From: Epiperipatus broadwayi
Lineage: Eukaryota; Animalia; Onychophora
DNA: 64,000 nucleotides
Direction: 5' to 3'
Assembly: GCA_028023455.1 (NCBI GenBank)
Contig: JAQFVV010000005.1
Location: 12,400,001-12,464,000, forward strand
The translations under genes and the position numbers were made by a program. Of this stretch, positions 1-64,000 are shown one piece after another (positions within the stretch are counted from its first letter, which is position 1; each line of letters opens with the position of its first letter). The notes below the pieces were generated by a model, which was given only the letters and a program-made list of their open reading frames with translations, ran no database searches and was not told the origin of the DNA.

Positions 1-1576
1 ATGCTAAGAAATTTGTGGGTATTTGATTACAGATGTACATTCTCAAAAAAAATCACTAGTGAATTCTGAATACCAAATGATTTCAAATTATTGAAGACAT
101 ATATCTTAAAAACGTTTGCAAATGATTTCAAATACAAAATAAGACCTGTTTAAATCTAATAAACTGAAAACTAACAGAAAAATGTATATATAATGTAAAG
201 GCATAATTGCAATCAAGAAGTATATAGGGTGCCCTGAGAAACAGACACTCTACTGAACACAAAATTGAGATTACATTTACATTATGTGCATTAAGTTTAT
301 TAGCTTTCCATTAGATTGATTCATCACCTGATATTATTCATACCAGGTATGAATATAAAAGCTATAGGAAATGACATAGATGCTAACTCTAACACTTATA
401 TGGAGATAGCTTTATAAATTAATACCCTAATCCTCATTTAATCTAAATGAATAAAATGTAAAATTTACCTAAATTATATGATTACAAATTATAGTTTAGC
501 CAGATACCTCATTTAACAAAAGGAGTAAAATCATTAATTTAATTAATAACAAAACAATTTATTTACATTCAGTTATAATATACTTCATAAATAATCCTGG
601 TTAGATATTAAGTGATAAATATAAAGGGTTGTGTCTATATAATGCATTAAACCATTTGCAGTGTTAGACAAATAACAAATTTGGAATTGAACAAAAACAT
701 ACAATTATTCTCATTTATACGATATAAGTTCATATAATTTATGACTTATTCAAGTTTGAAATACTATCTAATGATAAATCAACTAAGTATCAAATCTTTT
801 CCATTAATTCACACATATATATTGTACTGGACAAAACATGTTTATCCATCTAACATGAGCTGGAACTCACAAAATGTACTTCAACCTGGGCTGGGAGGTT
901 TCCATTTCAATATATATATATATATATATATTAACCATTGACTATGTCTAAATAAAGTATTGGAAGGAAGTTCAGGATGATGAAGTGATAAAACACATTA
1001 TCAATGCTTGCTTAAGCACTTTAAAGGATCTAGTATATTTTACTTTATCCTGAGTAATTGGAAGGTTTAAGGTCTAATAGTTATTGACAATTATTCCTTA
1101 GTAAATTGTTAGATGATTTTATTATCTGCAGTTTTATTAATCTTTACTGATTGTCTTTCCTTAATCCAACATCCTATAACTCTAGGTTTTGGTAATAGCT
1201 GTAAAGGCATAAACTATTTGATTATTTAATATCTTCTTCAAAGAGATTTGTTTTCCTTGTCATGTATATTCCTATGGTAATAATATATATATATATATTC
1301 CATTGCATTATGGGCTAATCCTAAAGCATCAAGATATCTGCATGAAGAAATAAATTTTTTACATTTTATTATTGTACATATATAATTCCATTGCATACAT
1401 CCTTTGAAGCTAGCACTAAATATTTAAGCAATTATTATTTGATGTTTAAATTTCCTTTTGATATAGTTTATCTCTAATCTGTTTATGGTCGCTATTATTG
1501 GTATTTCCAAAGTAATTTCGTCATCATTCCATATATGGAGTTTAAATATTCTATTTTAGCCAACACACACATATAT

Positions 1577-1786
1577 CACATGATCACCATTTCTTATGCT
1601 TGCTCAAGCTGTTAAAACAGGCAAAACTCTCCATACAGTAGTGCCACTTGGTGCAAACTAGAAACTAGTCTGGGGATATTGGATGAGTAGGCACTAGATA
1701 GGGATTTTATGCACAAACCTTCTTGTACCCTCTGATTACTCTGGCTTGCACTGAGTGGCACTACTGTATGGAGAATTTTACCTGTT
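1577..1786. mobile_element. HHR family A fold-back insert (half hammerhead only)
   Basis: Antisense tail plus AAACAGGCAAAACTC segment switches at CTAGAAACTAG into sense GAAACTAGTC^TGGGGAT...CCTGTT. Flanked by a degenerate 13-bp TSD, CACACACATATAT (1564-1576) / CATACCCATATAT (1787-1799). CTGANGA core absent. Confidence 0.85.
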
Positions 1787-2564
1787 CATACCCATATATA
1801 TAAAGACTTCTTGAATTTGGCTTTGTAAACTTGAAAATCTCAGTATAGAGAATAAATTCCTTTTTGAGCACTAAGTTAATATATTCCAAGTGTTATTAGA
1901 TCTTGATTTACATTTAGATCTCAATGTTGGAGGTATGTCATGATACATTATTCATTCAGCACTTCATCTCTAAGCTTTTCTTACACTTGTACATTATAAA
2001 TGAATACAACTTTTAGCCTTTACTGTTTCATAACAATTTTACTTTCGTGAAATTTCCTTTGGAGGTAGAAATGGTTTTTTTTTTCTTTTGTATATATAAA
2101 GTAGTAAATTTTATATAAAAGAACAAGGAAAAACCTTTTTTTCAATAAATTCTAGTTGTTTTCTCAAGCAATTGCATTGTCAGGTATTATCTAAGCTCAC
2201 AGTCCTTGGTTTTAATTTTCTCATGGGATTTATTGTTGTAGGAGGGAATTTAATAAATGATCACTCTTATGTTAAAAAAATATTTTAAAATATTATTTAC
2301 AGGCACAATTACATGCATAGTTACATTTATATACCTGTTTATTTTCATTAAATGCATATATATGTATAGTGAAGGTCTTGGGTGATAACTTTAAATTACT
2401 GCTTTAAATTTTAAATGTTGTTTTGACTTTTGTTATAAAAGAATTGTTTCTGCTGGAGATTTAAATGACATCTTAAAATGACCTTATTAAATAAATATTA
2501 CATTTTCTTTTAGAAGATTCAAATTACATTAGATCATTATTATTTCTTATTCTTAATTTTATAG

Positions 2565-3420
2565 CTATCGAAATGTGTTCTTACTGTATAGTAGAGTGTA
2601 GGTCAAACAATGTGGAGATTGAATTACATGGAGGTTGTAAAGATAATGGCCAGTTATTTCATTAATCAATAATCTTAAATGAGTAAAAAAAAATTTATAA
2701 TGTATATTTTGACTACAAAAGGAGTGGTAATACACTTTAATGACATAATACGCTGTAAAAATCAAAACATCACTTTCAACCATTTATAAATCTAATCTAT
2801 TGCAGAATGAGTCATTTTTAAAATTAATCCTACTTCCTCTGATCCATAATTTTTCTATATCAATGCAATACTGAAAAAATTCCTTCTCTCATATATTCAT
2901 GTCATTTTTGATCTTTTTATATTAAGTGTACGATTTCTATTTTCCATATACTGCAATCTTTTTATAAATACATCTGGCCTAATTCCATTTCATCATCTTA
3001 ATTGCCTAAATAACATCAATAAAATTTGTTTCTTACTAATAAATTTCACTTTGAATATATCTATCCTTCACAACTGCTACTCCATTAAGAAATAAATACA
3101 ACACAGGAATGTAGTATAATCACTGCTGTTGGATTCTGATAATTATTTTTCAGAATTTAACAATATACCACATCTAGATAATGTTTTGAAGTTTTAATCA
3201 CTACATAAATATTTAGTCAAACAATTTTCTGTATTCTAAAATTTCAATAAAAAAATGGAAACTCATATTTATTGATTTTCTATATAAATATATATTCTCT
3301 TAATGCATGGATGTCGTCTATCTCTTTTAAATCCAGTTCATTCTCTTAGTAGTTTAAATCCAGAATTCTCTATATATAACATCTAATGATCCATTTACAT
3401 ATATGTTGGGTTTTAATTAG
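2565..3420 (-). pseudogene. Highly decayed non-LTR (LINE) reverse transcriptase remnant
   Basis: Minus-strand readings resemble RT motifs in the expected order (E.Q.GF.R..S-like, IHALRE, FI...YRKLFD, G..IN...L..D region) through many stops and frameshifts. Extent uncertain. Confidence 0.4.
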
Positions 3421-5751
3421 TGATATCGTCTTTATTTTTCTAAAATATTAATAGCACTACCTCATTCTTCCAATCATATGGTAGATTTTATTCTTCCAGT
3501 TATACAATATCATTTTATTCTTCCAATCATGTGATATGTCTTTATCTTTTAGAAATTACCTACAATGATTTTTTGTGTATTAACTAGTATAAAGCGCCAT
3601 CAAACGATTTGTATGGTCAAAAAAATAACTACCGATTTTTTAATAATTCAATTATATGAAATTTCATCTCCTGTCTAGAATTAATTGCTTTTCTCATAAT
3701 TTCTTTCAGAATATATGGCATTATAGTTGCTAAGTAGTTTTCTTACTCTCTATTCTCTTTTTTAATAAAAATCTTTCATATTTTGTCATGTCATTTCTGC
3801 ATTTTTTTATTCTTTTTATTATAGAATAAACTTTTTTCGAATGCCAAAATGAAACTTTACTCTAGGAGACTTACATTCTTTTGTACAACTTTTTTTCCAT
3901 TTCAGTTTTACTCCCTTAAATTATCATTATTTTTTTTCTTATCACTTGACATATTCCATTCAAAATAGATTATTTGGAATTATTTTCATAGCCATCACTT
4001 CCTGCATATCCAGTTTCATATCAATTCTAAAATTATGTTTTTAAATTGTTGCATAACTACCCCAGCGATGTATAGAACTTTTTTCCTGAATTTTATTCAA
4101 GATGGGCTATTTTTAAAATATCTCAACAATTTAAAATGTGTTGTACATTTTGATTTAAATTCACTGGAGTATTCTTAAAAACTAAAGATATCAGTTACTA
4201 CTACTGTAGCAGTTAACAGTTTTTTAGCTTTGCATTCACATTTACTAAATATCTCACTTATACAAGGATCACTTCCTGTACTGAATCAATTATATTATTA
4301 TATTTAAATGTATATTTCCTATTAGCTAAAAATGAATTCAATTCTTTTTATCTCCGAGCTATCATTTTTATTATCTCTTTGGATTTTGTTTTTTTTAAAA
4401 AAGTTCCACAAATTTATATCCACTGACTGCACTTTTATCTCTCAAATATTATCTAATTTCAGCATTAAAATCTACCAAAACAACTTTAAAATGTTGAAAT
4501 ATTTTTAGTACATATAACTTTGGCATAAATCTGAATTACATGCATGTGACATTTTTCATTAAGTTTAATGCCTATTCTAATATACTATCAATCCCAATAT
4601 TAAAATGTTATGTGACATAGTAGCCCATCTTCCGTGCCTACAATCTGATGTTCGAGTTAGAGCAAGTAGACCTTACTGGATTCTTTAGGTCATAAGATAA
4701 CTTATAACTTTTCTCAGATAGATAGTCCACAGTCAACTCAGCAAAATGTTTAGTGAATAAATGGGTATATAACTGCAAGATAAATACTAGAGATTAATCT
4801 ATATTGATCACATAACTGCTGATATACTGGCTGTAAAACAAATGATTATAACATGATGCAGTTTTCACCACTAATGGAGAAAATATCATATCCTTGTGAC
4901 TATTAGAATCATAAAAGTATGAAATCCTCATAAAGTGGAAAAGGATCAACTTCTATGAGCATAATAATGCAATAGAAGTATGAGATCTTCACTAGTACAG
5001 AGGCATTATAATTCTAGGAACAGGATATTGATCCCTTATATTCCCACTGTTTATGTTTTATATTAAAAGACAACTTTTAAGTCATCTTTTCTTCTAATTT
5101 CATAGTCTATTCATATCCTATTAATAATTTAATTCTTTCAATTTATAAAATCTTCCTTTATTTGAAAATATAATTATAGATAGCTAAATAAAATGCCTAT
5201 AATACAGTTATTCTTAACAACTTCTAATTTTGCACACCCATTTCTGCCTTGGAGTTGATGATTTCACAGAATTTATAAAAAGAGAAGCATTCTTTTCAAA
5301 AAATTTGTAAATTCAGAGATGAAAGATAGTAAACTCATCACACTTGCTCATGACTAATGGTAAAATGTGTCATACATGTTTGTTTGAAGCATCAATATAA
5401 AATAAAATTCTCCTGTCATTAACAACAAACTTCTTTTTGCAGTCACATATATATTATTATATAATTAATTATTTTAAATAGCTAAAACTGAAGAGGCATT
5501 AAGTGAATTCTTTATGAAATAACATATTAAATGATATATATGCATAATAGCCAACTTTTGAATTGTAAACTAAGGCACATAAAAATTCCTTCATCAGCAA
5601 TGCCATCATGTATCATCTTATTATTTTTAATCTAGAATATTAATTTTTATGTAACAGTGAGTTTATTAATCTTTTTATAATTATAATAGAGAAGATTAGG
5701 ATAAACCTAAAAAAAATCAATTACAGCACTAATTAAAATATATATACATAT

Positions 5752-7528: not shown

Positions 7529-7626
7529 ATATATATATAAATATTGATAGCTCACTATATAGAAAGAAATATATGTTAGCATCTTGACAATAAAACATAA
7601 GTTACATGTGAAGGTCATTCTAAAGA

Positions 7627-8400
7627 GAAGGTAATCAAACCTCCACACATGTGGCATACTATAATATTCAATTAGCAGTTTTAAATATGGATAAACTCTC
7701 GATCCAAGTCACAATATAAAGACTTTAAAAAGATAAGATTGGTCATCTTATCTTGGTACCTAAATGCAATTATATAGGCAAATTTTAAGCCTCTTAAAAC
7801 AGGAGCATGAATATATTAAATTATTCACTTTACTTATATTTCTTTTTTATATCCTACTAACACTTGCGAAATATTGAAATTTATTAGTGTTAATACTAGA
7901 TGTAATACTTAATGTAAAGAAATTTTTACTAGCAGTGTCAAATTATAATTCTAAGAAGGTAATCAAACCTCCACATATGGACCATACTATAATATAAAAT
8001 TAGCATTATTAAATATAAATAAACTCTCAATACCAGTCACAAGATAAAAACTTTGAAAAAATAAGAACAGCCAACTTATCATTATATATAAATGCAAATA
8101 TATAAGCAAATCTTAAGCATCTTGGAATGAGAGTATGAATGTATTAAATTATTCATTTTATTTATGTTTCTTTTTTATATCCTATTAATTCCAAGGTGCT
8201 TAAGATTTGCCTATATAATTGAAGATAAGATGGCTGTTTTTATCTTTTCAAAGTCTTCATCTTGTGACTTGGATCAAAAGTTTACTTGTATTTAACACCG
8301 CTAAATGAATATTATATTATAGCGGATGTTTGGAGTTTTATCTTTTCCTTAGAATTGTAACTTGACACTGCGCTAGTAAAAATTCTTGATTATTTACATT
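7627..8400. repeat. ~328-bp direct tandem pair plus an inverted third copy (fold-back)
   Basis: GAAGGTAATCAAACCTCCAC starts at 7627 and 7955. 8189-8400 is the reverse complement of ~7911-8127, leaving a ~60-nt loop. Confidence 0.85.
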
Positions 8401-9929: not shown

Positions 9930-10176
9930 ATAATGAATATTTCGGTAGTGTAATCTTCATTACACCACTCTCACACAAGGTGAGGAATGGTTTCTATCCG
10001 CTTTTAAGGATCTTGGATGTAATCATAAACATATGACCAAAGACATGTAAAAAGATGTCTTTGATCATGTGTTTATGATTACATCCCTCCACAAGGTGTT
10101 AAAAGCCAATAGAAACCATTCCCTACCTTGTGTGAGAATGGTGTAATGAAGATTACACCACAGAAATATTCATTAT
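9930..10176. repeat. 247-bp near-complete palindrome (MITE-like or fold-back)
   Basis: ATAATGAATATTTC...GTGTAATCTTCATTACACCA is mirrored by TGGTGTAATGAAGATTACACC...GAAATATTCATTAT, with pairing continuing to a small central loop around AAAGACATGTAAAAAGATGTCTTT. Confidence 0.9.
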
Positions 10177-11873: not shown

Positions 11874-13445
11874 ATATATTCAAAAAAGTACTGTGATATG
11901 ATATATTAAAATTGATTTACTTTGTGCAAGCCCACCATCATCACAAAACATTAATAAAATACAAAGAAAAATATAACCTCACTTAAGAAAATATGAGAAG
12001 TATAATCAATAGATGAAAAGATTACATCTAGTTTGGCATCTTATTCTATATGCAAGACTACTTTTAAATATTTAGAACTGCGTAACAGATAATGGAAGTA
12101 GCGATATAGAAATTGCAATTATTTGCTTCTTAATTAAGCTCATTCATTATGCAATCTATAGAAATTTCAGGGAATACTTTTTAAATGTTTCGTTTGAAAT
12201 ATAAATTTACATATCATCAACGGTATTTTATTACTAAAGGCAATATACTAATAAAAATAAATCAAGTAATTCAATAATTCTAAAAAAAAAATTATAAAAA
12301 AAAAGATGTTTTCATTTTAAAGATAGCTGTTTAAATTACGTTATTTATTCTCTACGCCGTACTATCCACATTATTTAATGAATGTACATCTCTAATCAAG
12401 TTTATTTTAAAAATATTATATTAAATGATACCATATATAATAAATATATTTGTACTACCCAAAAACAGAATCATACCTTAGTCTTATTATTGAAAGAAAA
12501 CGTAAACGTTAAATAACAATTTTTTAAGCATAAGTCTCAATGAAAGCTGCCATACGTGATCTTTAAACGAGATTTTAAAAAAATCTTAATTGAAACTAGT
12601 TTTAATTTTTTCGCTATATATTTTATTTAAGGTTTTGTAATGTACTTAATGGTAAAGAGGATTAATATATTTGTTATATTATGGTAGTACTATTACTGGA
12701 TTATATTTAACGTTTATGATAATTATAGTGAAAAATAATTATATTGAAAATGCATTATATTCATCTTATTTATTTATTTACATACTTAAAATTTATAAGC
12801 TTTTACATTAAAAATAACACATAATTTTTTTTTATATACAGTATATTAGTATTTTTTTTTTTTTCAAAATCAAATGGCGACGCCAAATTTTTGGGGCCCC
12901 TAAAAACAAGAAATAATTCACATCTTTTGTAATAGTAAATCTGTTTATTCATATTAGTGAAGTACTCTATTCAGTAGTTCTAGATTTTATCTATCCTTGT
13001 TATTATGATCATGAAGCAAATTTTTTTTCATTGTAGTGTCTTAAAATTTCACCTATTACTCTTTTTATGCATTATAGCACGTTTTACTATTTACTGTGAT
13101 GGACAAGCGTGACTTATTATATAAAAACGTATTATGAATATATTTATAATGTAGAAAATGCAATCATACTTGAATCTCCTCCCTCCCCCTCTCTTTAATG
13201 AAATGAAAATGAAGGCACTGTTACGATTATGTAATGAATTATAAATATCATATGAGGCTCTTCAGGGAAAAATAGAATGGACATTAGTGCATGAAAGACT
13301 ACAATATATGAATGTAAACAAATTAGTAAAAAAAAAAAAAAGTAGCTAGATTATATGCAGGTGGTAGCAAACAGCTAAAAAGATATTACTATATGAAAAG
13401 TTAATAGATAGTTTACATTAAAAAAATAATGTGTAAAGAATATAA

Positions 13446-13900
13446 GCCAATAAACATCACATGATCACAATTTCTTATGCTTGCTCTTAACTGTTATTAA
13501 AACAGGCAAAACTCTCTATACGTATTACCACTCAGTATAAGCCAGAGTAAGGCTTGTGCATAAAATCCTCATCTAGTTCCTACTCATCCAATATCCCCAG
13601 ACTAGTTTCTGGCTTGTGGCCTTAGTCAGTGAGGAGCCTTGGATCTGAGAGCACTGCACCTAGATCTTAGTATCTAATGCAACCCTTCGGCAGCCACCTT
13701 TTATCTCTACCTAACTACAAAACTATGAGATTTAAATTGAAAACACTATTTTCAATTTAAATCTCGTAGTTTTGTAGTTAAGTAGAGATAAAAGATGGAT
13801 GAGTAGGCAGTAGATGGGGATTTTATTCACAAGCCTTCTGGCATCCATTGATTACTCTGGTTTGCTGAGTGACAATATGTATAGAGAGTTTTGCCTGTTT
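13446..13900. mobile_element. HHR family A fold-back insert
   Basis: Perfect 12-bp TSD TAAAGAATATAA (13434-13445 / 13901-13912). The antisense unit turns at the TTGAAAA-CACTA-TTTTCAA hairpin and returns as sense sequence ending CCTGTTT. Confidence 0.93.
13594..13635 (-). ncRNA. Minimal type I hammerhead, core-mutated (CUGACUA, G8U)
   Basis: Reverse complement reads TCCTCA CTGACTA AGGC CACAA GCCA GAA ACTAGT C TGGGGA. Confidence 0.7.
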
Positions 13901-14626
13901 TAAAGAATATAAATCTAATCCTGGACTGTCATAATACATTAGGTAACTTAGACATTTATTAGAGGCAGCATTAAAATATATAATATATTTTATTTTTATA
14001 TTAAATTTACTTTTATACTCTTTAGACATTGCCTAATAATTGAATATGTATTTATATTTTTTTCTCTTTTAAATTGAAAAACAGGCCTGTCATCCATAAG
14101 AACAAATTGGGTAATGCATTCATCCAAACATATCTTTCTTTGAATTAAATATTTTGCATGGATTATTATAATAAAGACCAGAAATAAGATGATTATATCC
14201 ATATGAACAGAGATAACTTTTGCTTATAATGTTGCCAGGAAACTATCAATTACTACTAATTGACAATCTTCCTGAAACTAAATTAGTTTACTCCATTGAC
14301 TTACAGTAGATCTTTTATCAGGTGTATTGTTGAATACAAGAGTATTCACAATATAAATAAAATAAACTTTTATTTTAAACTTTTTTTTTTCCAATATTTT
14401 AATATTTTGTATCTGTACATAGATCCATTTCTTTTATATTTATAAGATTGAAATAAAATATTGTGTTTGTTTTAAAGTGTGTTGTGTTTTCTAAAACGTT
14501 ATTAGATTTTGATGGGGGAAAAGCCAAATACCATTGGCATAAAGTTGATATATATTCTTATGATGGTACTAATGCCATTACTTAAGAAAGTAGGGAGAAA
14601 AACAAGATATGTCTAAAGGTTGACCT

Positions 14627-23860: not shown

Positions 23861-24125
23861 ATTTAAATTACAAATACAAATGAAGGGAAGAATCAATATT
23901 ATAATTAGCTAAATAAGTAACTCTTTTTTTAAAAAAAAAAAAAAATTGATCCATTAATTCTGATGTATAAAATTGTAATGTACAGAATTTGAAAGAAAAT
24001 AAGTATATCGATAATAAAACAGGCAAAACTCACTATACGTATTGCCACACCAGCAAGCTAGAGTAATCAATGGATGCCAGAAGGCTTGTGCATAAAATCC
24101 TCATCTAGTGCCTACTCATCCAATA

Positions 24126-47439: not shown

Positions 47440-49031
47440 CGTTAAGTGTGGTGAATAGATATAGTTATTTGGGAATTATTTTAAGTAATCATAAAAATTG
47501 TTTGGATGAATGGAAGAAAAAATTGATAAATGAAGCAAAGAAAAGAAAGGGATTGATAAAGAAATTAACAGTGTTTTCATATAATAAATATGATGTAGCT
47601 AGAATTTTTGGTAGGTTGCAGTTTATGGATAGTAAAAGAATAGCTAAAATAGTATTTAATTGGGTTATGAGTAAAGGGCATGTAACAAGATGGGTGAGAA
47701 AGGTAATGCGGTATGCAAAAGATTTGGATAAAGAATTTATATCAGTATATTTGTACAAAAGATGGGCTGATTGTGTTAAGAGGATTATTGGGTGTTATAG
47801 TAGTAAGGATTGGGATAAAAGAATAAGTTTATTAATAAAGACTAGGGAGTTAGAGAGATGGAGAAATAGTATGGAGAGTAAAAAGAGTTTAAATATATAT
47901 AGAAATAAACAGAATATTAGGTGTGAGTTAATATATGGTCAAGGTATAAACATATATAATGTATAATGAATATGTAAATAATAATAATTGTATAAATATA
48001 ACGAATATATAAAAGTAATAATAATTGTATAAATGTAGAATAAAAGTAACAACTGTAATGTATAATAAATATGTAAAATAACTGTATAGTAATTAAGAAT
48101 AACGATTGTGTAAAATTACAATGTTATTAAATCATAGAAAGTTGTATAATAATAAAAAGCCCAGCTGTCCTTATAGGGTCAGAAAACTATGTAAAATACC
48201 ATATACGGTGAGAAACGTAAAAATACTTTGTGTTTGTGAAAACGTATGTGAAAACACCGTATATGGTTAGGAATGTAAAAGACTCCAGAAGTCTTGAGGG
48301 GTATATAAGCCCCCATAAACTAAACTAATTGTTCTTATGTTCTGAATACGTTCTGAGTATATTCTAAGTTTTAATTATGAGTCAGAGACTCCTGCCTCTG
48401 TAAGTCGAAAGCAGGACTAGGGTATTTTATGTAGGTCACCACGACCTTTTATTATTTTATTACGCCTTATAATAGGCGATGTATATAGTTAAAATTATCC
48501 GTATTAAACTATAATCTTACCATCTCAATTCTGCCTTTGTCCATTTATTTACTTGCAGGTCATAAGACACTGCAATATGATAATAGTAAGGAAAGTAGTT
48601 TATTGTTTAAGGCTCGAACAGGATCTTTAGCTACAAAAGAATATACATGTAAATGGAAAAATATGGGTGATTTATTTTGTAAATTATGTAAGGAAGGAAT
48701 AGAAAATATTAGGCATTTGTTAATTGAATGTAAATGTTTGAAAACAGAAAGGGTACATATAATGAAGTTGTGGAAAAATAAATATGAAAAGAGTGATTAT
48801 ACAGAAAGTGAATTATTGATTTTTATGCTGGGTTTGGGAAAAGATAAGGGGGATATAGATATAAAGGTTATAGAGTTGACAAAGATTATGTTGTGAAAAT
48901 GGGATGGAGCAGATTATGATTAAATTTAGAGTGGGGAATGTAAAATAAAGTGGCTAACAGGTTTATCTGGGCATAATCGCTGAGATATTCTTGACTTCGT
49001 TTAAGGAGAAGCCATAATACATCACATCACA
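47440..49031 (+). mobile_element. 3' portion of a non-LTR retrotransposon (RT thumb + CCHC-like knuckle), split by a solo LTR
   Basis: VNRYSYLG..., then ...NIRCELIY joins DNSKESSLLFKARTGSL...CKLCKEGIENIRHLLIEC once 47936-48574 is removed. CATCACATCAC tail. Confidence 0.8.
47936..48574 (+). mobile_element. Solo LTR-like insert (~640 bp)
   Basis: TG...CA inside the LINE TTAATATAT/GAT junction with duplicated AT(A)T. AT-rich tandem U3-like repeats and a TATATAAG box near 48300. Confidence 0.65.
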
Positions 49032-51089
49032 ATAATTGTGCTAGCGGTTAATATTGCACTTTTAATTAGCAAATTTATATATTTAAAAAATAATAATTTA
49101 GATAAATTATTAGGATTAATTTAAGTTAGAGGCAATGGAAGACATGTTACTGTAATAAAAGTTTACTTTTTATATGTCGTAAATTCAAAATATTTAAAAA
49201 AAGAATTTAATTTCTATATATATTCCTTTCAAATTCTTAATTTTTTTCTCATAATCTCTCAAATAAACATGGTTCTGCTAATTTAAGCTTCATTTCGGTA
49301 AAAATTGGTGAATTTGAGAATATCATGAATTTTATAATATTTGGATACTATTCTAGGCCAATATAACTCCGTGTGATCGTGGAGATGTCTTTATTTGATT
49401 TTAGTTCAGTATAGGAAGAAAAATAACAGTTCCAAATTGTTCATTTGAATGAAACAGCAGAGATCAATTTTGTTCTCGTTCTAAGTATAACTATGCCCTC
49501 TAACAACAAACTTATTACAATGTATATGCGTTTATTATATATATGGAATTTTCTTTCTTTCTGCTGCTATTCATGAATTGGACTGCTCTGTGAAAGCCTT
49601 TTCCTAATCAATTTAAATTTTTTAGTAAAAATTCCGCGAAATTTTTTTTATTAATTAATACTTATTACAATGTGATATGTCAGACTTTGAAACATTTATA
49701 TGAATTCTGTTTTTCTCATATGTCCTTGTATTCTATAATTATCTAATAAAGTTTGTTAAAAACATGAGCTTATATTAATAGACGTCCATTGTATTAGGTG
49801 TATAATAAATAACACTGCTTTATTTATGAATGAAAGTGATTAATTAAAAGATAAAGAACAATTATAATTAATTCTAGAACATTCCACATTACGAGGAAAT
49901 ATATAAAAACTCGAAGATAAAAAAAATCGAGGTCTTTTTACACACACATCATTTTAGCTGCTCATGCTAGAGAAGTTAAAAGTAATCGAGTGTAATGAGG
50001 ACTATGGATGGACCCAGTGAACACAACCACTGAAAGTTCCAAAGACCTAGGGACTATACAGGCCACATTGGCCTTATTATAATTTATGTACGCCTTGTTG
50101 GCATTTCGTAAGTAATATTAGTCATATGCACAAATTGTAAATATATTGTGTTAGTAGAATCTTACTATTTTATTTTCTGTTGGTCTGACCATTTTTATCC
50201 CTGATTGTAGTATTCATGGTGGCTGTGCATAGCTGAAACCAATGTAATTTTCAGCACTATTTTTATATGGTTTGGAGTTATCTTATCTTTAAAATTCAGA
50301 TCTATCTCTTGTTGTGTGAATCCTCTGATTTATTGACCATAGATAACTCCGTTACTTTCCATGAGATCCGATTTTTTATTTGTCAAATACCTTACTTACA
50401 AGCTCCTATTTTTGAGTGTGAGTAGCAGTCTTTTTAATTAAATTATTTCAATTATTTATATCCTTAAATTTAATCTAGTAATATGTTTACAAGCATTTTA
50501 ATTACTTTTTCTAGAATATCATTTTCACCTTTTTTATTGTTAAATGAAAACACGTTTTGTTTTTTGTTTTTATTGATGGCATACGTTAAAGTAATGTATA
50601 AGACTGAATTATCTCGTATCAATAAGCTATATATTCCGAATCCAGGAGTAGCACATTTTTTTGATTTATATTTGTTCAGAAGTTTATATGGATGATATTA
50701 ATTACTGAGTCAACAAGATCATGCCATTAGATTTTGAGAAATTTCATCTTTTTTTAACTTTCTTTAACTTCTCATGCAGAAAACCCATTTGCTCCAAATG
50801 TAAACAGTTTCTTCATGATAACAAGACAGGGTATTGTGCATTTAACTATGAAATATCTCATGTATATATCTACTGTAGATTATGCCATACAAAATATTTA
50901 CCAAGATACCATTAACCTCTTCATCTCCCTGTTTACTTCATTGTATTTTTCAAGCCCACATTGCAATGTAAAAAGAAAAAAGTAAACTTCTGGAAGTACA
51001 TATGATTTCTCTTGGCATGTATTATAAAGATATTTTATAAGCTGAAAACAGTTATATAAAAAATGCAAATCCTTATGTTTTTAATATAA

Positions 51090-51403
51090 GTATAGAGGAT
51101 TTGAACTCAGATTTTCAAGCACCCTTCAACTATCCACATTATCTCATACAACGGATACCCATGACCACAGAGCATTGATTATATATATATGTGTGAGAGA
51201 TGATAGTCTGGACCAACTGATGAGTGCTGGTTTAGCATGAAATACGTATATTGGTGATTATTAATCTTTTCTACATGTGTGTGGTCATGTGTATCAGTTG
51301 TATGAGATAATGTGGATAGTTGAAGGGTGCTTGAAAATCTGAGTTCAAATCCTCTATACTTACAATTAAGCTCCCAGGTTTGTGAAGAGTACCTGGTTTT
51401 CAA
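51090..51403 (+). mobile_element. HHR family C fold-back insert
   Basis: Perfect 15-bp TSD ATGTTTTTAATATAA (51075-51089 / 51404-51418). ~83-bp arms (51087-51169 / 51280-51362), a ~41-nt unpaired tail on the right, and an HHR in the loop. Confidence 0.92.
51212..51255 (+). ncRNA. Minimal type I hammerhead, intact core, AUA triplet
   Basis: ACCAA CTGATGA GTGC TGGTTTA GCAT GAA ATACGTAT A TTGGT: 5-bp stem I, 4-bp stem II, 8-nt palindromic stem III. Predicted cleavage after 51250. Confidence 0.88.
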
Positions 51404-51428
51404 ATGTTTTTAATATAACAAAATAAAA

Positions 51429-54070
51429 CATCATCCTCAGCTATCATCAATCCATTGCAAGATGAAGGTCTCTCCAAATTCAATCTATCTTCTCCAATCT
51501 TTAGCCATTTTTCTCCACATCACTCCTGTACACTTTCTTATTTCATCCATCCATCTCACATATAATTTTTCTGGGTCTTCTACGATTTCTTGGAATCCAC
51601 TTTAAGATTTCAATTGTCCATCTATTATAATCTCTTCTAGCAATATGTCAAACCCAACTCTACTTTAGTCTGTGAATTCTTTCAATGGATGTCAGTAACA
51701 CCTATTGTTCTCTTACCATATATTATGTTTTTGATCTCTTCTTGTTATTCCTAACATATATCTCTCCATACTTATTTTGGTGGTTTGCAGTCTCTGTATT
51801 GCTCTTCTATTAAGTGCCTAAGTTGCAGATTCATAAGTAATAACTGGTAAAATACATTTATTAAAAACCTTCCTTTTCAAACACATAGGCATATTTCCTT
51901 TTAATATTAAGTAATTTCTACAAAAAGCACTCCAACCAAGTTTATTTCTATGATTAATTTCATCCATTATGTTTTCATCTCTAGTAATAATCTGACCAAA
52001 GTATTTGCTGTTAACTTCTTCTAACTCATCATAATCAATCTTTATTTTCATCTTTTGAGAAAATCCAACATTACTTTAGTCTTTTTAACAGTTACCTTTA
52101 GTTCTACTTTCTTACTTTCATCTGATAACTCTTGTAACATTTCCTGAAGCTCTGCAGCATTATTTTCAAAAGCAACTACATTATATGCAAAATCTAAATG
52201 ACTTAAATAATCTCCATTTATTTTTACTCTTTTAGCTTCCATTTTAATCCACAAAATACTTCTTGTAGCACTGCAGTGAAAAGTTTTGGAGATATGGAGT
52301 CACCCTCTTTTATATCCTTCTCAATCTTAATTTTCCTAGTATTATTGTGTAATCTAATTATTGCTGTTGCATTTTTATAAATATTCTTCAAAATATGATG
52401 ATTCAATGCTTTAATCACTGAATAAATGGTTATAGAATCAAATATCTTTTCATAATGTACAAATCCAAAGCATAATGGCAACTCATATTCATTGGTCCTT
52501 TCTATAACTTCTCTCAATACTTGGATATGATCTACTATATTAAAACCATTTTTAAATCCAGCTAGTTCTTTTGGTTGGTGGAAAGTTGTAATTATTTTGG
52601 TAAAAATTTTGTATAAAACTGATAAAAGACATGGGTCTGTAATTTCTAATATTTTCTTTATCACTTTTTTTAAATATTAATATTAATACTACATTTTTCC
52701 AACCATCTGATACATCTTTATCATTTAGACATTTGATATATACCTTGCCAAAAAATTTTCTATTTCTTCACCTGCTTCTTTTAACATATCAATTATAATT
52801 CCATCATTAGCTGGAGCTTTTTCCTTCTTCAAAAATTTAATTGAATGTCCCACTTCTTCATTTAAAATCCTGGACAATTCAGAACATATAATAAATGTAG
52901 GAGGTACTTGTTCTTTATTACTATATAATTCTTGATAGAACTCTTCTACCCATTTCATGATGTCATCTCTCTTTTTATTAATAGTTCCATCTTTTTTTCT
53001 TATTGCAGATAAAGTTTCATACCCATACTAAAATATTGTTTTACACTCTTGAAACTTTTATTCTCTTCTACAGCTTTCCATACTAGTTCACAATTATACT
53101 TTTTTATATCATTATCAACTCTTTTTCACACCATTTTACAAAATTCAAGATGTTAAATCCTTCTTAATGCACTATTTTTGTATATCTTCATATTTCTTCT
53201 TTTCTTCATAAATTCTCTAGTCTCAGTAGAAATTTTATTGGTCAATTGCTGCTTTTTTTAGCAGCTATTTTTGTTGCAGTTTTTAAAAGTCTGTCAGTTA
53301 ATTTTTCTATTAATTTCATTCAAATCTGAATTATGTTCAAAATTTATTAATACTTGAAAACGATTTACAAGTTCTAATTTAAATTCATTAAAATGTTTTT
53401 GAAGATTATAGATATCAATTGTAAATAGTCTTTTTAAAACTTTTGTCTCTCTAGTTTTGCATAATACATATTTTACATCTTACTAATCGATGGTCACTTC
53501 CTGTGTTGAATTTATTAAGGATATTACAATCTTGAAATATGTATTTTCTGTTAGTCAAAACTTAATCCAATTCTGCTGTACCTTTATTTGGATGCTTCCA
53601 TGTCCATTTCCTTTTAACACTTTTCTCAAAAAAAGAATTCATAATATAGTTTTTCTTTTTTTGCAAACTCCACAAGTCTATGTCCTCTCTCATTTTTATT
53701 ACCATAACTAAATTTACATTTAACACTTTCATTTGTTTATCAATTCTAGCATTAAGGTTTTCTCTAAGAATTTTAAAATGTTGTTTACTCTGATCAAAAG
53801 CCTTTTGTACATCCATATAAAAATCTTCTACTACTTCATCACTATGAGAATTTAGTTGGGGCATAAATCTGAATTATCTGCATATAGTATCTGCCATTAA
53901 GTTGAATAACTAATCTTACCTCTATATCCGATGCATCATCAGTCTCACAATGTTGTTCTTTCACTTTTTATTTATAATTACTCCTACTCTACTTGTACTT
54001 CCAATATTTATGCCTTTACGTATCCACTTTTTAATTTAATTGTCTTTTCATCTTTCCTTCCTAACTGTTT
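51429..54070 (-). mobile_element. Decayed RTE-clade LINE (APE endonuclease + RT)
   Basis: IIQIYAPT..HSDE.VEDFY, FFEK..KRKWTW (APE); KAP..DGI, Q..GF..GF..VDHI..LREVIE, GDSISPKLF, HLDFA (RT); 3' end GAGACCTTCATCTTGCAATGGATTGATGATAGCTGAGGATGATG. Confidence 0.9.
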
Positions 54071-55770: not shown

Positions 55771-57333
55771 ATTGTGTACATTTATTAGAAGAAAAAAAAT
55801 TCATTCACACATACATTTATTCTGCCTTATCAGACAATTGAAAAGAAAGACCTTGATATTTCTTGATCTTAAACTCAGAATAAAAAGGCAATAAACTCAC
55901 CATGCTGGCTAATGCATGTTAGTGAGCAGCCCATCTATGTTCATATACTATATGAATAATCACATAGTAATAATAGCTGCAATGACAAGAACGTATAGAG
56001 TGGACATTAGGAATTTGCCCTGCTCAGTTACTTTAAAGTCTTAAGAGGAATCAAAGGATCTTCTTTCAGTTAACAGCAAACTCATTTCTGTAGCCAAAAT
56101 AAAACATATTACAGTCAATTCTACTAGAAGAAAATACTAAATATTATTATTTTGATAGGTAAAATTATAATTGCTAATCCATAAAAAGTTTGGTTAGGAA
56201 TTATTACCTATCTTACTTAAAATAACATCTAATGAGCTCAAAAAGTTTGATATTTATGAAAAAAATATCTGAGTTGTGGTGATAAAAACACTTCTCACTG
56301 AAACTATTGTAGAAATAGAGAGTATTAAACAGTCATGTGACAGACAAAGAAAAAAGAATGGACTGATTCTATAGACCAGGAAGATATTCTTATTTATATA
56401 GAGTTAAGAGAAACATAAACAAATGAAATAAGTTACAAATTGATAATTTAAATATGTAATCAAAGCTAAAGAAGATATTAAATGAGACAATATTTGATGA
56501 AACCATAGTAAAATGACAAAAATTATATCTTGCAATGCATTGTCTCTCAGTTGCTGTGCCTAAAATCAGGGTGACTATTGCTAAGAAAAAAATAGATAAC
56601 TTAATAAATGTATTAGTACCAAAATACTACATCCTATATAACAAGTCTTTCATAATAATTTTGCTTCAATAAACAAAAATGAATAATAGATCCAAATAAA
56701 AAGCAGTTGTCTGAATAAACATCGTTTACTATCACTAAATATGAATATTAATTATTAAGATGTACTATTATACTCATTACACAAATAACTGCTATGTATT
56801 TTATTGCAAAACCAAAAGATATGGTCTATAAAGAAAAAATTCTTGATAAATTTATTGTTGAAGGTATGTAAAATAACTAAGTAGTCGAATTTTAGAACCA
56901 AGTATTGATCATTATCAGCAGCACTTCATTATTTTACAGTCATATTTGGCATCTCATATAATATTGCCACTATAAATTAATAGATTTTTAAAATAGGTTG
57001 ATGATGAAATAATCAAAGGGGAAAAAATATTTTATGAATTATATCAAGGCACCACATCAAAAGTTTGAGTGCTCAATATGGATCCTACCATCCTATATGT
57101 CATAGTTCAACCCTTTTCCTCTATTAGGTAATTAGAAATCAGTTTGAAAAATTATATATATATATATATTAGTAAAATATCAGTCATATATCACATGACC
57201 TATATAGCTTGTATTACCAATATGTAATATATAAAGAGCCTGCTAATAGCTCTAAACAAGCTTATTTATTTTATTTTTTTATGATAAATGCTACAAGAGA
57301 AAATACCTGAAGCCTTTATCTATGATGGTCCCC

Positions 57334-57377
57334 ATCCCCAGACCGGTTTCAAGCTTATGGCTCTCATCAGTGAGGAG
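57334..57377 (-). ncRNA. Minimal type I hammerhead, intact core
   Basis: Reverse complement reads TCCTCA CTGATGA GAGC CATAA GCTT GAA ACCGGT C TGGGGA. Confidence 0.9.
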
Positions 57378-57568
57378 CTAGGACATTAGATTCAAAATAT
57401 TAACTCAAGCCAAGCATTTATCTAATTCTTAAATATTAAGAAAAAGATCCAAATCTTCAGACACTTACATGTCTTCAAACTCAGCTCTTTAACCAAAGAA
57501 ACTATATGAGCCTGAACTATATATATATATGTTTGGCTTGAGTTTATATTTTGAATCTAATGTTCTAG

Positions 57569-57612
57569 CTCCTCACTGATGAGAGCCATAAGCTTGAAAC
57601 CGGTCTGGGGCT
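57569..57612 (+). ncRNA. Minimal type I hammerhead, intact core
   Basis: CCTCA CTGATGA GAGC CATAA GCTT GAA ACCGGT C TGGGG. Predicted cleavage after 57605. Confidence 0.9.
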
Positions 57613-60309
57613 GGGGACCATCATAGATAAAGGCTTCAGGTATTTTCTCTTGTAGCATTTATCATAAAAAAATAAAATAAATAAGCTTGTTTAGAGCTAT
57701 TAGCAGGCTCTTTATATATATATGGTTATTCTCCAAATGTCACTGCCATCACTTCACCCATAACATTTAGGTGTTTGCATTTGATAAACTCATGGTTATA
57801 TGTAATGTATGAATACAGAAACATTTATATCAACAATATAGTGCCAGAATTACTCAATTTTGAAAAAGTATATTTATGGAGACATTACTATTACTAACAT
57901 TTCACCAACAGGTTTTAGAGATTTGGAAACCTATAGAGATATGTAACATATAAAAATAGAAATATTTGTATCAATAACACAATATCTGATTTTACATTAC
58001 TTACATCCAGGCTATATATGATTTTATTTTTATCAAAGGCAAGAGTTTTGTATACAAGAGAATTCGCAGTATCTATGCTAATGTTTAAGATAGAGATATT
58101 AAAAAAACTAAAATGTTAAAAATATATTCATTAATTATTATCTTGTTCTTTAAGATATTGAACATTTAAAATTATAATATTTCTTAAATTAAGAATTGAG
58201 TACAGTATGTGTATTAGGCCAAAGAGACCATACTGCATATATTTGAAGACTGTAAGAATTTTAAGAAACGGGACAGCAAATTTTAAAATGGCAGATATTA
58301 AAGTGAAATATGTATGATTGAAACTTTTTAATGTAATCATAGTGTGTATATTCTGATTTGCTATATGTTATGAAATGTAAATTTGTTTTCGATAATAAAA
58401 AATACCATTCATTAAAATTTTAAATGATAGAAAATATATAAGTATTTACATACAGCAATAATAATAATTAAGAATAATGATGTATTACAAACAATTAATT
58501 ATGGTTATAATCATATATATGGTAATAAAATATAATATTAATGCATAAAAATAATAGCGAAAAAAAAAAGATACTAACCATAATAAAAGTTGCAATTCAA
58601 AAAAAATTCAGAAAATAATAATTAGGATATAATGTATTTAATCAAAACTTTATTTTAAAATAACTTAAATTTTATTGTGTACATATTTTTTTTTTACTAT
58701 AAACAATGCCTATGAATTATAAAAGTCATGCATTGAATGCCATCATTAAATATAAATTTTGGTCTTTCCGATTTTAATTACATTTTATTTATATACATTT
58801 TTTTATTAAATAAGGTAAAATTATTTATTTGTGAGAAGTTATAAAATATTTATTACTGTATACAATATATATAAAATTAAATTGTAATTCTAAAACTATT
58901 AAAATTATGTATTAATGTTTTAATTCTGAAATTATCAAAATGATGAAAATGGGAGTACTCTTTGATTTTTAAATGGAAAAAGGATTAAACATAGTGAAAA
59001 TGATGAATCGCTATGACACATCAAAAAGGAACCAACTTTTAAATCTGTTCAGAGAATAAAAATATGATAATTATTGAAAGAAATACATAATCAACTTTTC
59101 TCAGATGGTTAAACAAAGAAATAAGTTAATATGAAGTGATTTGGGAAAAAAGAATGTAAACTATCATCAGAGAGTTATTTAACAGTTGAGAATTTATGAG
59201 TAACGTGTACATTATTAATCCTGCTTCCAAAAATTTGGCAACTTCTGACATCTAGCACAATATGTCAGCCATTTTGATGCATAAAAATATGCTCCATGAA
59301 TTAAGTAATAGTAGCATAATACATGTATATTATGGTAACAGTGCACTATTAACATTTTCATTTGGTAACATTACCCTGCTTGGTTTGATGAGTAGCAGGC
59401 AGGACGTCAAGGTCAATGGCTTGTGACTGTCCATCACTTCCATTACTTGAAATTCTTTCAACTATTTTTTATTAGTTGTTATGTTATGGTAAACTTGATT
59501 TATTGTACTTATGTTAATCATGTAACTGAAATTATGAATTCTAGATGTGAAGCACAAACATGTGTCCGTATCAATTCATGAAAAATTTGAATAAAGGAAT
59601 TTTTTTTATATATTAATCCTAAAAAATCTTTTAAAATACAAATTTTAAATGTATTCTTTTTTTATTATAGTAATAAATGCATTTTTCATTCTTGCAAAAG
59701 CGTTCAAAAATACTTTTCAAATAATATTTAGAAATAAATATTGCATTTGATTTTTATTAACATTTGTCAACATTCACATATATAAATGCATATTTTTATT
59801 ATTTACTGCAATGAAAATTATATTTAGATAGATCAAAACACATGAGGCAACCTCATCTCAAAATGTTTAAAAAGTGTTGGAAAAGTGTCATTCTTCACAC
59901 ACACAATGAAAATAAATTTAAATGTATTTTTGGTTTAATAAATACTGTATTTTTTTAAGGTTCTATAATTCATGTCTGCTTTTATTAACAAAATTTTTAA
60001 TCTGAGATGGGTGGATAACCAATGGTGCCAGATTAATAATATTGCATTAAAACCTGGAAAAGATGTCCATATGTTCAAATATTTAAGGTCACATATTAGT
60101 AACTCCCAATATATGAAAAATACAGAGGAGACTGCTGTGCTTAAAAAAAAATAAAAAATTGACTTTAGTATTCAATATAAAGTAAAAATAGTAGTTAAAT
60201 AATCAATTTTAAGTTTAGTACTTTAATAATAAATATTGCCATTATTGTAGAGTTTTTCATACTGTTTATAGATTAGTAATTATCTAAAATGAAGACAGCA
60301 TTGGAATTA

Positions 60310-60505
60310 AACCACTAAACATCACATGATCACCATTTCTTATTCTTGCTCCTCACTGACGAAAGCCACAAGCTAGAAACTAGTTTGGGGATATTTGATG
60401 AGTAGGCACTAGATAGGATTTTATGCACAAGCCTTCTAGCATCCATTGATTACTCTGGATTGCACTGAGTGGCACTGTTGTATGGAGAGTCTTGCCTGGT
60501 TTAAT
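60310..60505. mobile_element. HHR family A insert with inverted tail
   Basis: 13-bp TSD AGCATTGGAATTA (60297-60309) / AGCATTGCAATTA (60506-60518). Empty site at 46430-46442. Inversion junction at GCTC microhomology. Confidence 0.95.
60350..60391 (+). ncRNA. Minimal type I hammerhead, intact core, GUU triplet
   Basis: TCCTCA CTGACGA AAGC CACAA GCTA GAA ACTAGT T TGGGGA. Confidence 0.82.
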
Positions 60506-61629
60506 AGCATTGCAATTACGAGATAAATATTGGTCTATTGTCAGTTCTATATAAGTTTATTAGCAAGTTAGTTTGGATTTAAAACCTTAGAATATTTTAA
60601 AATTTTAGATTATTCACTTGATATCATAATGAATTCAATGTGATTGATAGATGTTTGTGTTAGGTCCAAAGTTTTTACTGACAATAGTCATAAGCTGGAA
60701 ATTAATATCAGGTATTAATATAATAGTTATTTGTCTATTCTCTATTGATTAAATAAGTTTATAATAGATGATGTGAGAGTAGAGTGAAGAGAATTGTTCT
60801 GCAAAGATAAAAATTACATAAATGTAGGCACTTGAATATTTTACAATACATTGTAACAAGATAGTGAAATATCTGCTCAAAGCAATTATGAGATATTCCT
60901 TCTTCAACTATCTTTTCTGCATTAATTATATTAGTGCTAATACAAAAAGCAATAATATGAAGCACATTTTTCATTTTATTTATTCAATACAGCACAATAA
61001 TTTTATTAAATTCTCCAATCCTGTTGCTAGTTTTAACTGTACATATGAAGGTTGTTGTATAGTCAAAACTATCGTCATCATTAGAGAATTTAGCAAAAGT
61101 TTTTGCATTGCATGGAGTGCATAAAGAAAATTAAATATTATATTGCCTTTTATAATAATAAGATATTGCAAAATAAATTAAAATGAAGATATTTAAGAAT
61201 ATTATAGGGGCAATTCTTAATTCTGTAAAATACATTCCAAAAATCTGAAAAAATAAAAAATTTTATTTCTAGAATATCTTATGTCAATTTTGGATTAATT
61301 GATAAAGCTGTCCTCAGTAATCTCTAGTCATCATTAAATCATAAAACAGCAACTTTTTCAAAATCAATTTAAACATGGTTATTAAAGTGTGTAATTGCCA
61401 TAATTTTTCTTAAGAATATTATTTCTAAACTATGTTGCTACTAGTATTACTAATTTACAAATTAAATATATATTTGTGATGCTTATTGCTTTTTATATTA
61501 ACTAAATAATCAAAATGAAAACAACAAAATTCCAATGTATTTTATCATACATTTAATTTGTCAAATATTTAATATCAAATAAACTTGTTCATTACATTTT
61601 TCAACTGTTATTTATCCCCTGCAAGGTGA

Positions 61630-61900: not shown

Positions 61901-63354
61901 AAAGTTCTTCATATTGTTCTTTTGTTAAATATCCAATTGTAAGATGCGTTTGTAAATATACATGCCTAATTTAAAATCTTTGTTTAATCGCAAAAACATA
62001 TTTTTCTGTAAGTGACGATAGAATGTTCTGATGAAATATGTATACATAGTTTGTTCATGGAATAAAAACATGATTTGTAAGGAAAATTATAGAAATTGAG
62101 AGATAATAAATATACCTTTCAAATTTGCTGCCAAACTTAACTGATAGAGGACGCCATTTAAACTTCCAGTGACGTGTTTGGGTAAAATCAGATCTTTCAT
62201 TTATATATTATTATATATTTATTTCCTAATCATGGATGGAAAACAATATCTGGGGATTTAGGTAAGTTTCTACTGCTGGTATTTGCAGATTCATGTTTTC
62301 TAAGTTTTTTGTACATTATTAGAATTAATATTGGATAGCGTATTGCGGGCCTCTTCATTAATCTAAAAAGTATAACTAAATTAAACCGTTAAATTTATAT
62401 TACTTAAATATTTTATTCAATTGTTTTAAAGTAGCCATTTTACACAATAAAAAAACTCATTTTGTGACTTCTTCTTTTGTTTTGTTTATTCAGCACCTAC
62501 TAATTAGACTTCAAATGATTTCATTATAAACTGTAACCGACATTTTAGTATCGAGATGCTTTTATTTTCCGATGACAAATTTTACTATTTTACTTTCCAA
62601 AAAATTATAGACTTCCTACGTAACATCTATGCATATAATTTTCTGTTTACTTTTATTAGGATCCTTTTTTTTTTTCATCAAATCTTTCGTATATTTTTGT
62701 AAAAAGTAAGTAATGGAATAATTTATTTATGAGGGTTTATAGGAACTTCAAGCACCGCTAATGACTGAGCAGCAGCCGCCGTCCATGGCCCTTGAATTTC
62801 AAAATCTGCCATTCTAAATCATAGAGGTAAAAAAAATCTAAATCGCTATGAATTTTAATAGATTTTTGGGTGAATGTCAATAACAAAAAAAAAGTAAAAC
62901 AAATATTAATAATGTAATTTAACTGGCCTAGAAGAATTTAATTAATCCATGTCAATATCGTGGTTTATCAATTGAAAATTTTGTTTTTCGTTTATATTTT
63001 GAAAGGCATATTACTCAAATTATATATTTAAAAGTTTTTAATGAAAAACTTGCATTTTCCATTAATTTCGCCACTGGTGAGATTCCTGAAATATACGGAG
63101 CTAGTTCCATTCAGAAAATACGAAAGCAAGCATTATTTTATAGTTGTTTTTAATAACACTCGTTTGTTTTTACAATACTGTATAATAAATTATCGTTTTC
63201 TTTATATTCACTTTAAGCTGAAGACAAGGTGACTTGGAGTATGTATTTAAAATATAGTATTTCTTTTATTCAGTATTAATATTCAATATTATAAATTGCA
63301 TTTATGGCTTCCTAGAAGGAATAAAAGTTCAATCATATTAAAAATGATAGTGTA

Positions 63355-63879
63355 TAATAATTGTAAACAAATTAATCATAATTGTTTTGACTTATTATTG
63401 ACACCTATGTGTATGTATAGACAAAAAGAGTTTGTGATAGTACTTTTGCGACATATTTGATGTGGATGAAACTCAAAAATTGTTTCAAATAGTAAGAACT
63501 GAAACACAGGCTTATTATATACCTGTGTCTAATAATTGTAAACAAATTAATCATAATTGTTTTGACTTATTATTGACACCTATGTGTATGTATAGACAAA
63601 AAGAGTTTGTGATAGTACTTTTGCGACATATTTGATGTGGATGAAACTCAAAAATTGTTTCAAATAGTAAGAACTGAAACACAGGCTTATTATATACCTG
63701 TGTCTAATAATTGTAAACAAATTAATCATAATTGTTTTGACTTATTATTGACACCTATGTGTATGTATAGACAAAAAGAGTTTGTGATAGGGCTTTTGCG
63801 ACATATTTGATGTGGATGAAACTCAAAAATTGTTTCAGATAGTAAGAACTGAAACACAGGCTTATTATATACCTGTGTC
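63355..63879. repeat. 3 x 175-bp near-identical tandem array
   Basis: TAATAATTGTAAAC starts at 63355, 63530 and 63705. Only a few substitutions, in the third unit. Confidence 0.97.
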
Positions 63880-63899
63880 TATATATGTAATATATAGGG

Positions 63900-64000
63900 T
63901 ATATGAGCACAGACTTTCACACCACCCACCACTCTATCTCATTGCACTGATACACCCAAACACATATATGTTGAAAAGATAAATAATCACCAATATACGT
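63900..64000 (-). mobile_element. Second family C copy, cut by the window edge inside its hammerhead
   Basis: Reverse complement ACGTATATTGGTGATTATT.ATCTTTTC.ACAT...GTGTATCAGT matches 51244-51350. The ribozyme core would lie just beyond 64000. Confidence 0.85.

Follow-up and report, generated by a model that had tools for sequence, protein, structure and literature searches.

Inserts without open reading frames carry hammerhead motifs and a Penelope-like insertion signature in the onychophoran Epiperipatus broadwayi

A 64,000-nt stretch of the genome of the onychophoran Epiperipatus broadwayi (positions 12400001-12464000 of contig JAQFVV010000005.1, C5, in the 5.6-Gb assembly GCA_028023455.1; hereafter the window) was found to hold ten short gene-less inserts and a set of minimal type I hammerhead ribozyme motifs within them. 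We consider it probable that these inserts are non-autonomous hammerhead retroelements without an open reading frame (ORF), namely metazoan non-LTR (long terminal repeat) retrozymes, most likely copied into the genome by the reverse transcriptase (RT) and GIY-YIG endonuclease of Penelope-like elements (PLEs). Mobilisation by a PLE, including the enzyme, the order of its steps and the activity of the ribozyme, is what we infer from sequence. Animal retrozymes, the fold-back and tail architecture of coding PLEs, and opposite-strand hammerhead pairs (described in 2014) are already known. What is new is that a PLE insertion scar has been quantified on invertebrate ribozyme repeats that lack an ORF, with a layout that is strikingly constant in three families and a tail that is almost always one-sided.

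Families and Monomers

Self-BLAST of the window and mapping onto monomers divided the ten inserts into four BLAST-distinct families, A to D. A first-pass annotation of the window had recognized at least ten short non-coding inserts, a count that is borne out here, and had sorted them into three families. Its placements of A, B (at 57170) and C stand, but an insert that it had given to B at 30810 (30780-31169 in our mapping) has no BLAST similarity to B and was designated D. An alignment of B with D revealed the ribozyme and two short downstream blocks in common and nothing else, so the two families are regarded as distant relatives. Dispersed copies of family A were detected by self-BLAST at 1575, 13446, 20449, 24012 and 60310, and a micro-copy at 38207 by monomer mapping. 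Asymmetric fold-backs make up eight of the ten inserts, in line with the earlier description of most of them; the exceptions are the insert of family D, which is a plain 5'-truncated copy, and a second copy of family C (C2), which is cut by the end of the window.

A first look across the genome gave candidate counts, to be read as lower bounds, of at least 4295 for family A, 1793 for B, 376 for C and 4181 for D, so that the prediction of very large genome-wide families holds. Ninety genomic loci of the families, 290 kb in all, were examined. In these loci the families form head-to-tail arrays with a period of 455 bp (A), 426 bp (B) or 477 bp (C); for D, the spacing of matches indicates a period of about 425 bp. 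Longer copies continue into the next monomer, up to about four units, and not into an ORF. The longest stop-free stretch in monomer trimers is 46-77 codons, and the G+C content of the monomers is 32-37% (25-32% for the window). A tblastn search with a PLE protein returned no match in the window or in the 90 loci. Because the monomers are ORF-less, tandemly arranged and without similarity to PLE protein, the families are regarded as ordinary metazoan non-LTR retrozymes, and the window inserts are therefore partial copies of these and no separate fold-back class.

Tandem periods, the lack of an ORF, low G+C content and thousands of copies are all shared with metazoan non-LTR retrozymes, whose quoted monomer length of 150-450 bp is reached or just exceeded by the 426-477 bp found here. 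Retrozymes have been described as having target site duplications (TSDs) of more than 4 bp and thousands of copies, as occurring in tandem arrays and solo monomers, and as proposed non-autonomous derivatives of PLEs (PMC7229834; 10.64898/2026.07.22.740005). The preprint of Li, Clavereau and Pollet (2026) bases this derivation on co-occurrence and on similarity to vertebrate PLE pseudo-LTRs (pLTRs) (10.64898/2026.07.22.740005). In a keyword search, the same two sources yielded no reference to fold-backs arranged head-to-head, to alternative 3' termini at fixed positions or to a tail on one side only (PMC7229834; 10.64898/2026.07.22.740005). The first-pass annotation had seen in the dispersed fold-back form a difference from tandem-array retrozymes. 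This distinction has to be given up, since the same families form the 426-477 bp arrays and the fold-back is the ordinary inverted-copy architecture of PLEs.

Plant LTR retrozymes are likewise non-autonomous, hammerhead-bearing retroelements. They carry type III hammerheads in true LTRs, a primer binding site (PBS), a polypurine tract (PPT) and 4-bp TSDs, and have Gypsy partners (PMC4918200). These features were not seen in families A to D, although the LTR, PBS and PPT were not specifically searched for.

Insertion Signature

Every array was mapped onto its monomer, and the insertion signature was measured in families A, B and C. In all three, the 3' end of the hammerhead-sense strand faces outward on both sides of a fold-back, and in almost every insert the outer ends read inward from monomer position ~1 or ~55 (A), 299 or 357 (B), and ~196 or ~243 (C). 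Each family has two such alternative 3' termini, spaced 55 nt (A), 58 nt (B) and 46 nt (C) apart; the sequence between them is called the tail. The first terminus (site 1) lies 118 nt (A), 120 nt (B) or 115 nt (C) downstream of the predicted cut site of the ribozyme. Plain copies, which are not folded back, have the same 3' ends and variable 5' ends. The termini end in unique sequence, with neither poly(A) nor a simple repeat at the 3' end.

The tail was found on exactly one side in 27 of 28 fold-backs of family A, 16 of 16 of family B and 13 of 15 of family C, that is, in 56 of the 59 fold-backs whose ends are canonical. Independent choice of the two ends would give mixed pairs in at most half of the inserts, and the binomial probability of the observed excess is about 6e-14 by our own arithmetic. 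The one-sided tail likewise speaks against a snap-back hairpin: had the second arm been copied from the first, it would repeat the end of the first. Within an insert the two arms are unequal in length, and the inner junction varies from copy to copy. No strong hot spot of the junction was seen at the ribozyme cut site, so uncleaved RNA seems to be the usual template for insertion.

The TSDs of family A are perfect or near-perfect, with a median length of 13 bp (range 11-16) and an A+T content of 85%; 23 of 27 score above the 95th percentile of mismatched-flank controls. For family B, the flanking repeats are of the (TA)n type in 11 of 16 inserts.

This combination of features corresponds to that reported for PLEs. 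Craig (2021) lists as PLE hallmarks strong 5' truncation, partial tandems, often an adjacent inverted 5'-truncated copy, a tail of 30-40 bp that is often present at one end only, and a bias toward microsatellites, and states that they are not seen with LINEs (long interspersed nuclear elements) (PMC8557442). The families described here show 5' truncation, partial tandems, an inverted truncated copy and a one-sided tail, together with AT-rich or microsatellite target sites and TSDs of variable length. Unlike coding PLEs, they have no RT/GIY-YIG ORF. A second line of comparison is provided by the anole PLE. Frangieh (2024) found that the purified protein of this element cuts both DNA strands at AT-rich sites and extends them, and that reverse transcription starts at two adjacent internal sites of the RNA, the intervening sequence becoming the tail; these start sites lie ~85-92 nt past the hammerhead cut site, and integration persists in ribozyme mutants (PMC11167929). 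The two termini downstream of the hammerhead in the onychophoran families resemble the two start sites of the anole element, and both DNA strands would be extended here as well. The distance from the cut site to the first start differs, being 115-120 nt here.

Hammerhead Motifs

Hammerheads were searched for with an explicit descriptor that called, in order, for a helix I (4 bp or more), CUGANGA, a helix II (3 bp or more), GAAA, and then helix III, U and H, where helix III has at least 2 bp or is a perfect palindrome. The descriptor found seven intact type I motifs in the window, whereas 200 first-order Markov simulations of the window averaged 0.03. The core order of type I, CUGANGA...GAAA...UH, is present, and the core is intact in these seven. 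Two additional motifs of family A are mutated at G8, which brings the total to nine minimal type I motifs, the same figures as those given by the first-pass annotation. A search for the variant cores A3-U8, U3-A8 and G3-C8 gave a single match, which is AT-rich and chance-like and was not retained.

In an alignment of the motifs of the four families, 92% of cells are paired, and compensatory double changes occur in 5 of 11 pairs. The covariation score is 0.372, which was reached by none of 500 shuffles, and controls with the structure slid along the alignment gave at most 0.114; the tested structure was, however, derived from the very sequences that were scored. Helix I of ~6 bp, helix II of ~4 bp, helix III of 1-2 bp with a small palindromic loop, and a base that can be unpaired or mismatched where helix II begins are features shared with the hammerheads of PLE pLTRs and satellites (PMC4209133).

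Helix III is a perfect palindrome that differs from family to family: ACUAGU in A, ACCGGU in B and AUACGUAU in C, the palindrome of the family C hammerhead (51212-51255) being 8 nt long. In the window copy of D, helix III is non-palindromic. A palindromic helix III is typical of metazoan type I hammerheads, which are expected to act as dimers (PMC4209133). Because their helix III is a short palindrome, the hammerheads of families A to C should, as a prediction from sequence, act as dimers as well. Minimum free energy co-folding of two ribozyme copies was uninformative on the active fold, as the palindromes simply pair with each other. Conservation within family C was equally uninformative, the ribozyme scoring barely higher than its flanks (0.87 versus 0.83).

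Strong CpG decay was observed across the copies of families A and B (L002-L060). Helix III of family B occurs as ACCGGT in 18 copies, ACTGGT in nine, ACCAGT in seven and ACTAGT in two. The palindrome of family A, ACTAGT, equals the doubly decayed palindrome of B, which hints at how palindromy may be restored between families.

A sequencing run (X1) of uncertain type, which may be DNA and is available as contigs only, covers A and B heavily and leaves the unique DNA between them nearly uncovered. Either expression or DNA of high-copy repeats sequenced at low coverage would account for this pattern, and contigs cannot reveal the ends of RNA.

Inserts in the Window

The six inserts of family A differ in size and completeness. 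A1 (1575-1786), a short and asymmetric fold-back, has its tail at the left and retains no more of the hammerhead than the 3' half; it corresponds to monomer coordinates +14-80 / -59-190, and inspection of its flanks gave no clear TSD. A2 (13446-13900), also a fold-back with the tail on the left, carries a G8-mutated hammerhead (CUGACUA) at 13593-13637(-) and is flanked by an exact 12-bp TSD (13434-13445 and 13901-13912). Its central hairpin at 13688-13808 gave the strongest Rfam matches in the window, to the plant models MIR5185 and MIR5070 at 54 bits (cutoffs about 100); a miRNA gene at this position was rejected, the match being taken as an artefact of the long hairpin. A3 (20449-20981) is a fold-back whose tail is on the right and whose hammerhead, at 20577-20618(-), is intact. 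A4 (24012-24808) is a large fold-back composed of one arm and a full permuted monomer; of its two hammerheads, that at 24651-24692(+) is intact and that at 24125-24169(-) (CUGACAA) is G8-dead. It is the sole fold-back of family A that is tailless at both ends.

A5 (38207-38258) is a micro-insert of ~52 bp, in which ~20 nt from start site 1 stand head-to-head with a ~40-nt tail from start site 2, between copies of an exact 12-bp TSD (38195-38206 and 38259-38270). It looks like a direct footprint of dual priming. A6 (60310-60503) consists of an inverted tail at the left and ~160 nt with an intact hammerhead at 60350-60391(+). Its TSD of 13-15 bp (60295-60309 and 60504-60518) contains mismatches, and an empty site was found in an older paralogous segment, which is uninterrupted at 46430-46442. 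Repeat pairs of 75-88% identity occur in the window at 31224-32535/40169-41459, 45447-46658/59319-60760, 42943-43329/58906-59339 and 41586-41887/48731-49033, and are either old segmental duplications or other repeat families. Because one duplicated pair supplies the empty site of A6, the insertion of A6 postdates the duplication.

The insert of family B (57164-57711) is a near-palindromic fold-back within a (TA)n run; its 58-nt tail is on the left only, and both of its hammerheads, at 57335-57376(-) and 57571-57610(+), are intact. The insert of family C (51090-51403) is an asymmetric fold-back that has its tail on the right, contains a single intact hammerhead at 51212-51255(+) and is flanked by an exact 15-bp TSD (51075-51089 and 51404-51418). 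The TSDs of A2, A5, A6 and C agree with the 12-15 bp duplications noted earlier for several inserts. C2 (63842-64000, minus strand) covers monomer positions 78-241, and the end of the window falls inside its hammerhead. Immediately beside it, at 63350-63890, a unit of ~175 bp is repeated in three tandem copies of 96-98% identity. D (30780-31169, plus strand) is truncated at the 5' side of its ~425 bp monomer; it has an intact hammerhead at 31002-31045(+), and its 3' end lies ~130 nt past the cut site.

A decayed LINE with an RVT_1 domain was found at 51429-53873 on the minus strand (ORF pieces 52227-52676 and neighbours), with a second copy at ~3400-4345. Its 3' end lies ~20 bp from the family C insert. 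A linkage between the two was considered and rejected: at none of its other copies (L073, L014, L024, L075) is this LINE joined to an end of family C, which makes their closeness here look coincidental.

Proposed Mechanism and Alternatives

In the mechanism that we favor, all families would share one layout: a monomer of 426-477 nt with a hammerhead, RT start site 1 about 115-120 nt on, and site 2 about 46-58 nt further. The endonuclease would first nick AT-rich DNA or (TA)n with a stagger of 11-16 bp. Both freed 3' ends would then prime cDNA on the RNA of the element, the start lying at site 1 for one of them and at site 2 for its partner, and the two converging cDNAs would finally be joined at a variable point. 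The expected outcome is a TSD-flanked, head-to-head fold-back in which the arms differ in length and a single side bears the tail; tandem monomers would arise from longer templates.

A more tentative proposal concerns the near-obligate one-sided tail. Each integration may use both internal start sites simultaneously, one per DNA strand, although at present we lean somewhat against this stricter version. It could be achieved by a paired (dimeric) PLE complex on one template region, and the tail would be a built-in by-product instead of an optional extension. If this is true, the simple snap-back hairpin model is excluded, and the monomer, with its order of hammerhead, ~118 nt, site 1, ~50 nt and site 2, would represent the minimal cis-acting template of PLE retrotransposition.

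Several results weigh against the interpretation of the inserts as PLE-mobilised retrozymes. Rfam detected no hammerhead in the whole window, either at the gathering threshold or at E<=10. On stretches of ~100 nt it gave sub-threshold scores of 19.2 bits for Hammerhead_HH9 (cutoff 52) and 10.5 bits for Hammerhead_1 (cutoff 34). It is because Rfam was silent that the explicit descriptor with a short palindromic helix III was used. At core positions 7-8 of family A, CG was counted in 17 copies, UG, which is harmless, in 20, and CA, which kills G8, in 17. Since CpG decays equally in both directions, the inserted copies are not under selection; they decay neutrally, so that any selection is restricted to the source copies. 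The tails of 46-58 nt exceed the 30-40 bp published for PLEs, and LINE reverse transcriptases are also present in the window. In addition, the search for a partner gave no positive result. Autonomous PLEs do seem to be present, which favors the PLE interpretation: a GIY-YIG profile yielded more than 10,244 first-look candidates in the genome, some of them within open frames of 870-901 codons and some in tandem or head-to-head pairs. One locus, L091, is apparently an intact PLE; its frame of 901 codons, in which GIY-YIG follows RVT_1, recurs with a period of 3,135 bp. When this one PLE was compared with A to D, no similarity or motif in common was found, and no autonomous PLE with the 3' module of A to D was found in this single comparison. 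At L091:383-440 (G000:C12394, ~20946980), a motif AUGAAUA overlaps the stop codon of the ORF. Of the earlier proposal that the inserts are ORF-less and mobilised by PLEs, the absence of an ORF is confirmed and mobilisation is supported by the PLE-specific insertion signature of three families; it is still an inference, and L091 shares nothing with A to D.

The inserts could instead be heavily 5'-truncated ends (pLTR fragments) of ordinary coding PLEs and not independent non-coding families, an explanation that we regard as unlikely. The insertion signature is the same as that of PLEs, and Cervera and de la Pena (2014), who described opposite-strand hammerhead pairs 100-700 bp apart, interpreted the minimal hammerheads that are widespread as single or opposite-strand motifs as such fragments (PMC4209133). 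The search for a partner also covered only L091. Longer copies, however, enter the next monomer 426-477 bp on and not an ORF, and neither the 290 kb of family loci nor the window has any similarity to PLE protein. Whereas the dispersed motifs of that study were assigned to truncated PLEs, the predicted ribozymes of this study are carried by demonstrably non-coding tandem families, whose monomers have no ORF.

It is quite improbable that the same retrozymes were mobilised by a LINE reverse transcriptase, in a SINE-like (short interspersed nuclear element) parasitism with twin priming. LINE RT remnants occur in the window, one of them ending beside family C, and 5' truncation with variable 11-16 bp TSDs would also suit the target-primed reverse transcription of LINEs. 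The 3' ends of the inserts, however, do not fit: they lack poly(A) and simple repeats, and two fixed internal termini, a one-sided tail and priming on both strands are unseen in non-LTR target-primed reverse transcription (PMC8557442). The neighboring LINE is an independent insertion whose other copies are unattached to family C ends. A LINE-dependent SINE was rejected for the same lack of a poly(A) or simple-repeat 3' tail, and a tRNA-like Pol III head was not found in the window.

Finally, DNA-level elements, either fold-back or MITE-type (miniature inverted-repeat transposable element) transposons or satellite fragments spread by recombination, with the hammerhead-like motif being incidental, are very improbable: a palindromic shape, the presence of hammerhead-free palindromes elsewhere in the window and the score of the family A central hairpin against plant MITE-derived miRNA models would suit them, but the ends are not inverted repeats of each other and have a tail on one side only, the inner junction is variable with unequal arms, TSD length is not fixed (11-16 bp), plain 5'-truncated copies share their 3' termini with the fold-backs, and the ribozyme fold covaries across families.

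Significance

The integration of PLEs is still poorly understood, and the link between retrozymes and PLEs has so far consisted mainly of co-occurrence and vertebrate pLTR similarity. Small non-coding families such as those described here provide thousands of natural insertion events, and in every one of these the two priming sites, the junction and the TSD are preserved. Such families offer an independent in vivo match to one in vitro study, with two internal start sites and both strands extended, and an argument from the insertion scar that retrozymes use PLE machinery. In genome annotation, such fold-backs should not be entered as MITEs or miRNA-like hairpins but should be labeled PLE-type retrozyme insertions.

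Other Features of the Window

Palindromic repeats without a hammerhead motif are present at 7921-8384, 9930-10176, 23315-23498 and 23706-23859; they may be MITEs or ribozyme-free fold-back inserts, and the one at 9930-10176 has weak matches to miRNA models. A 119-aa ORF at 48537-48896 (+) gave a weak zf-RVT match (27.4 bits, cutoff 27.5) and is probably a further LINE remnant. At 18432-19037 (+), an ORF of 201 aa, in which a Pif1 helicase 2B domain was recognized (E=1e-13), may be the remnant of a Helitron-type helicase. An array of C2H2 zinc-finger repeats at 28100-29800 (+), with ORFs at 28148-28561 and 29463-29804 and an internal self-similarity of 63-72%, looks like a zinc-finger gene or pseudogene.

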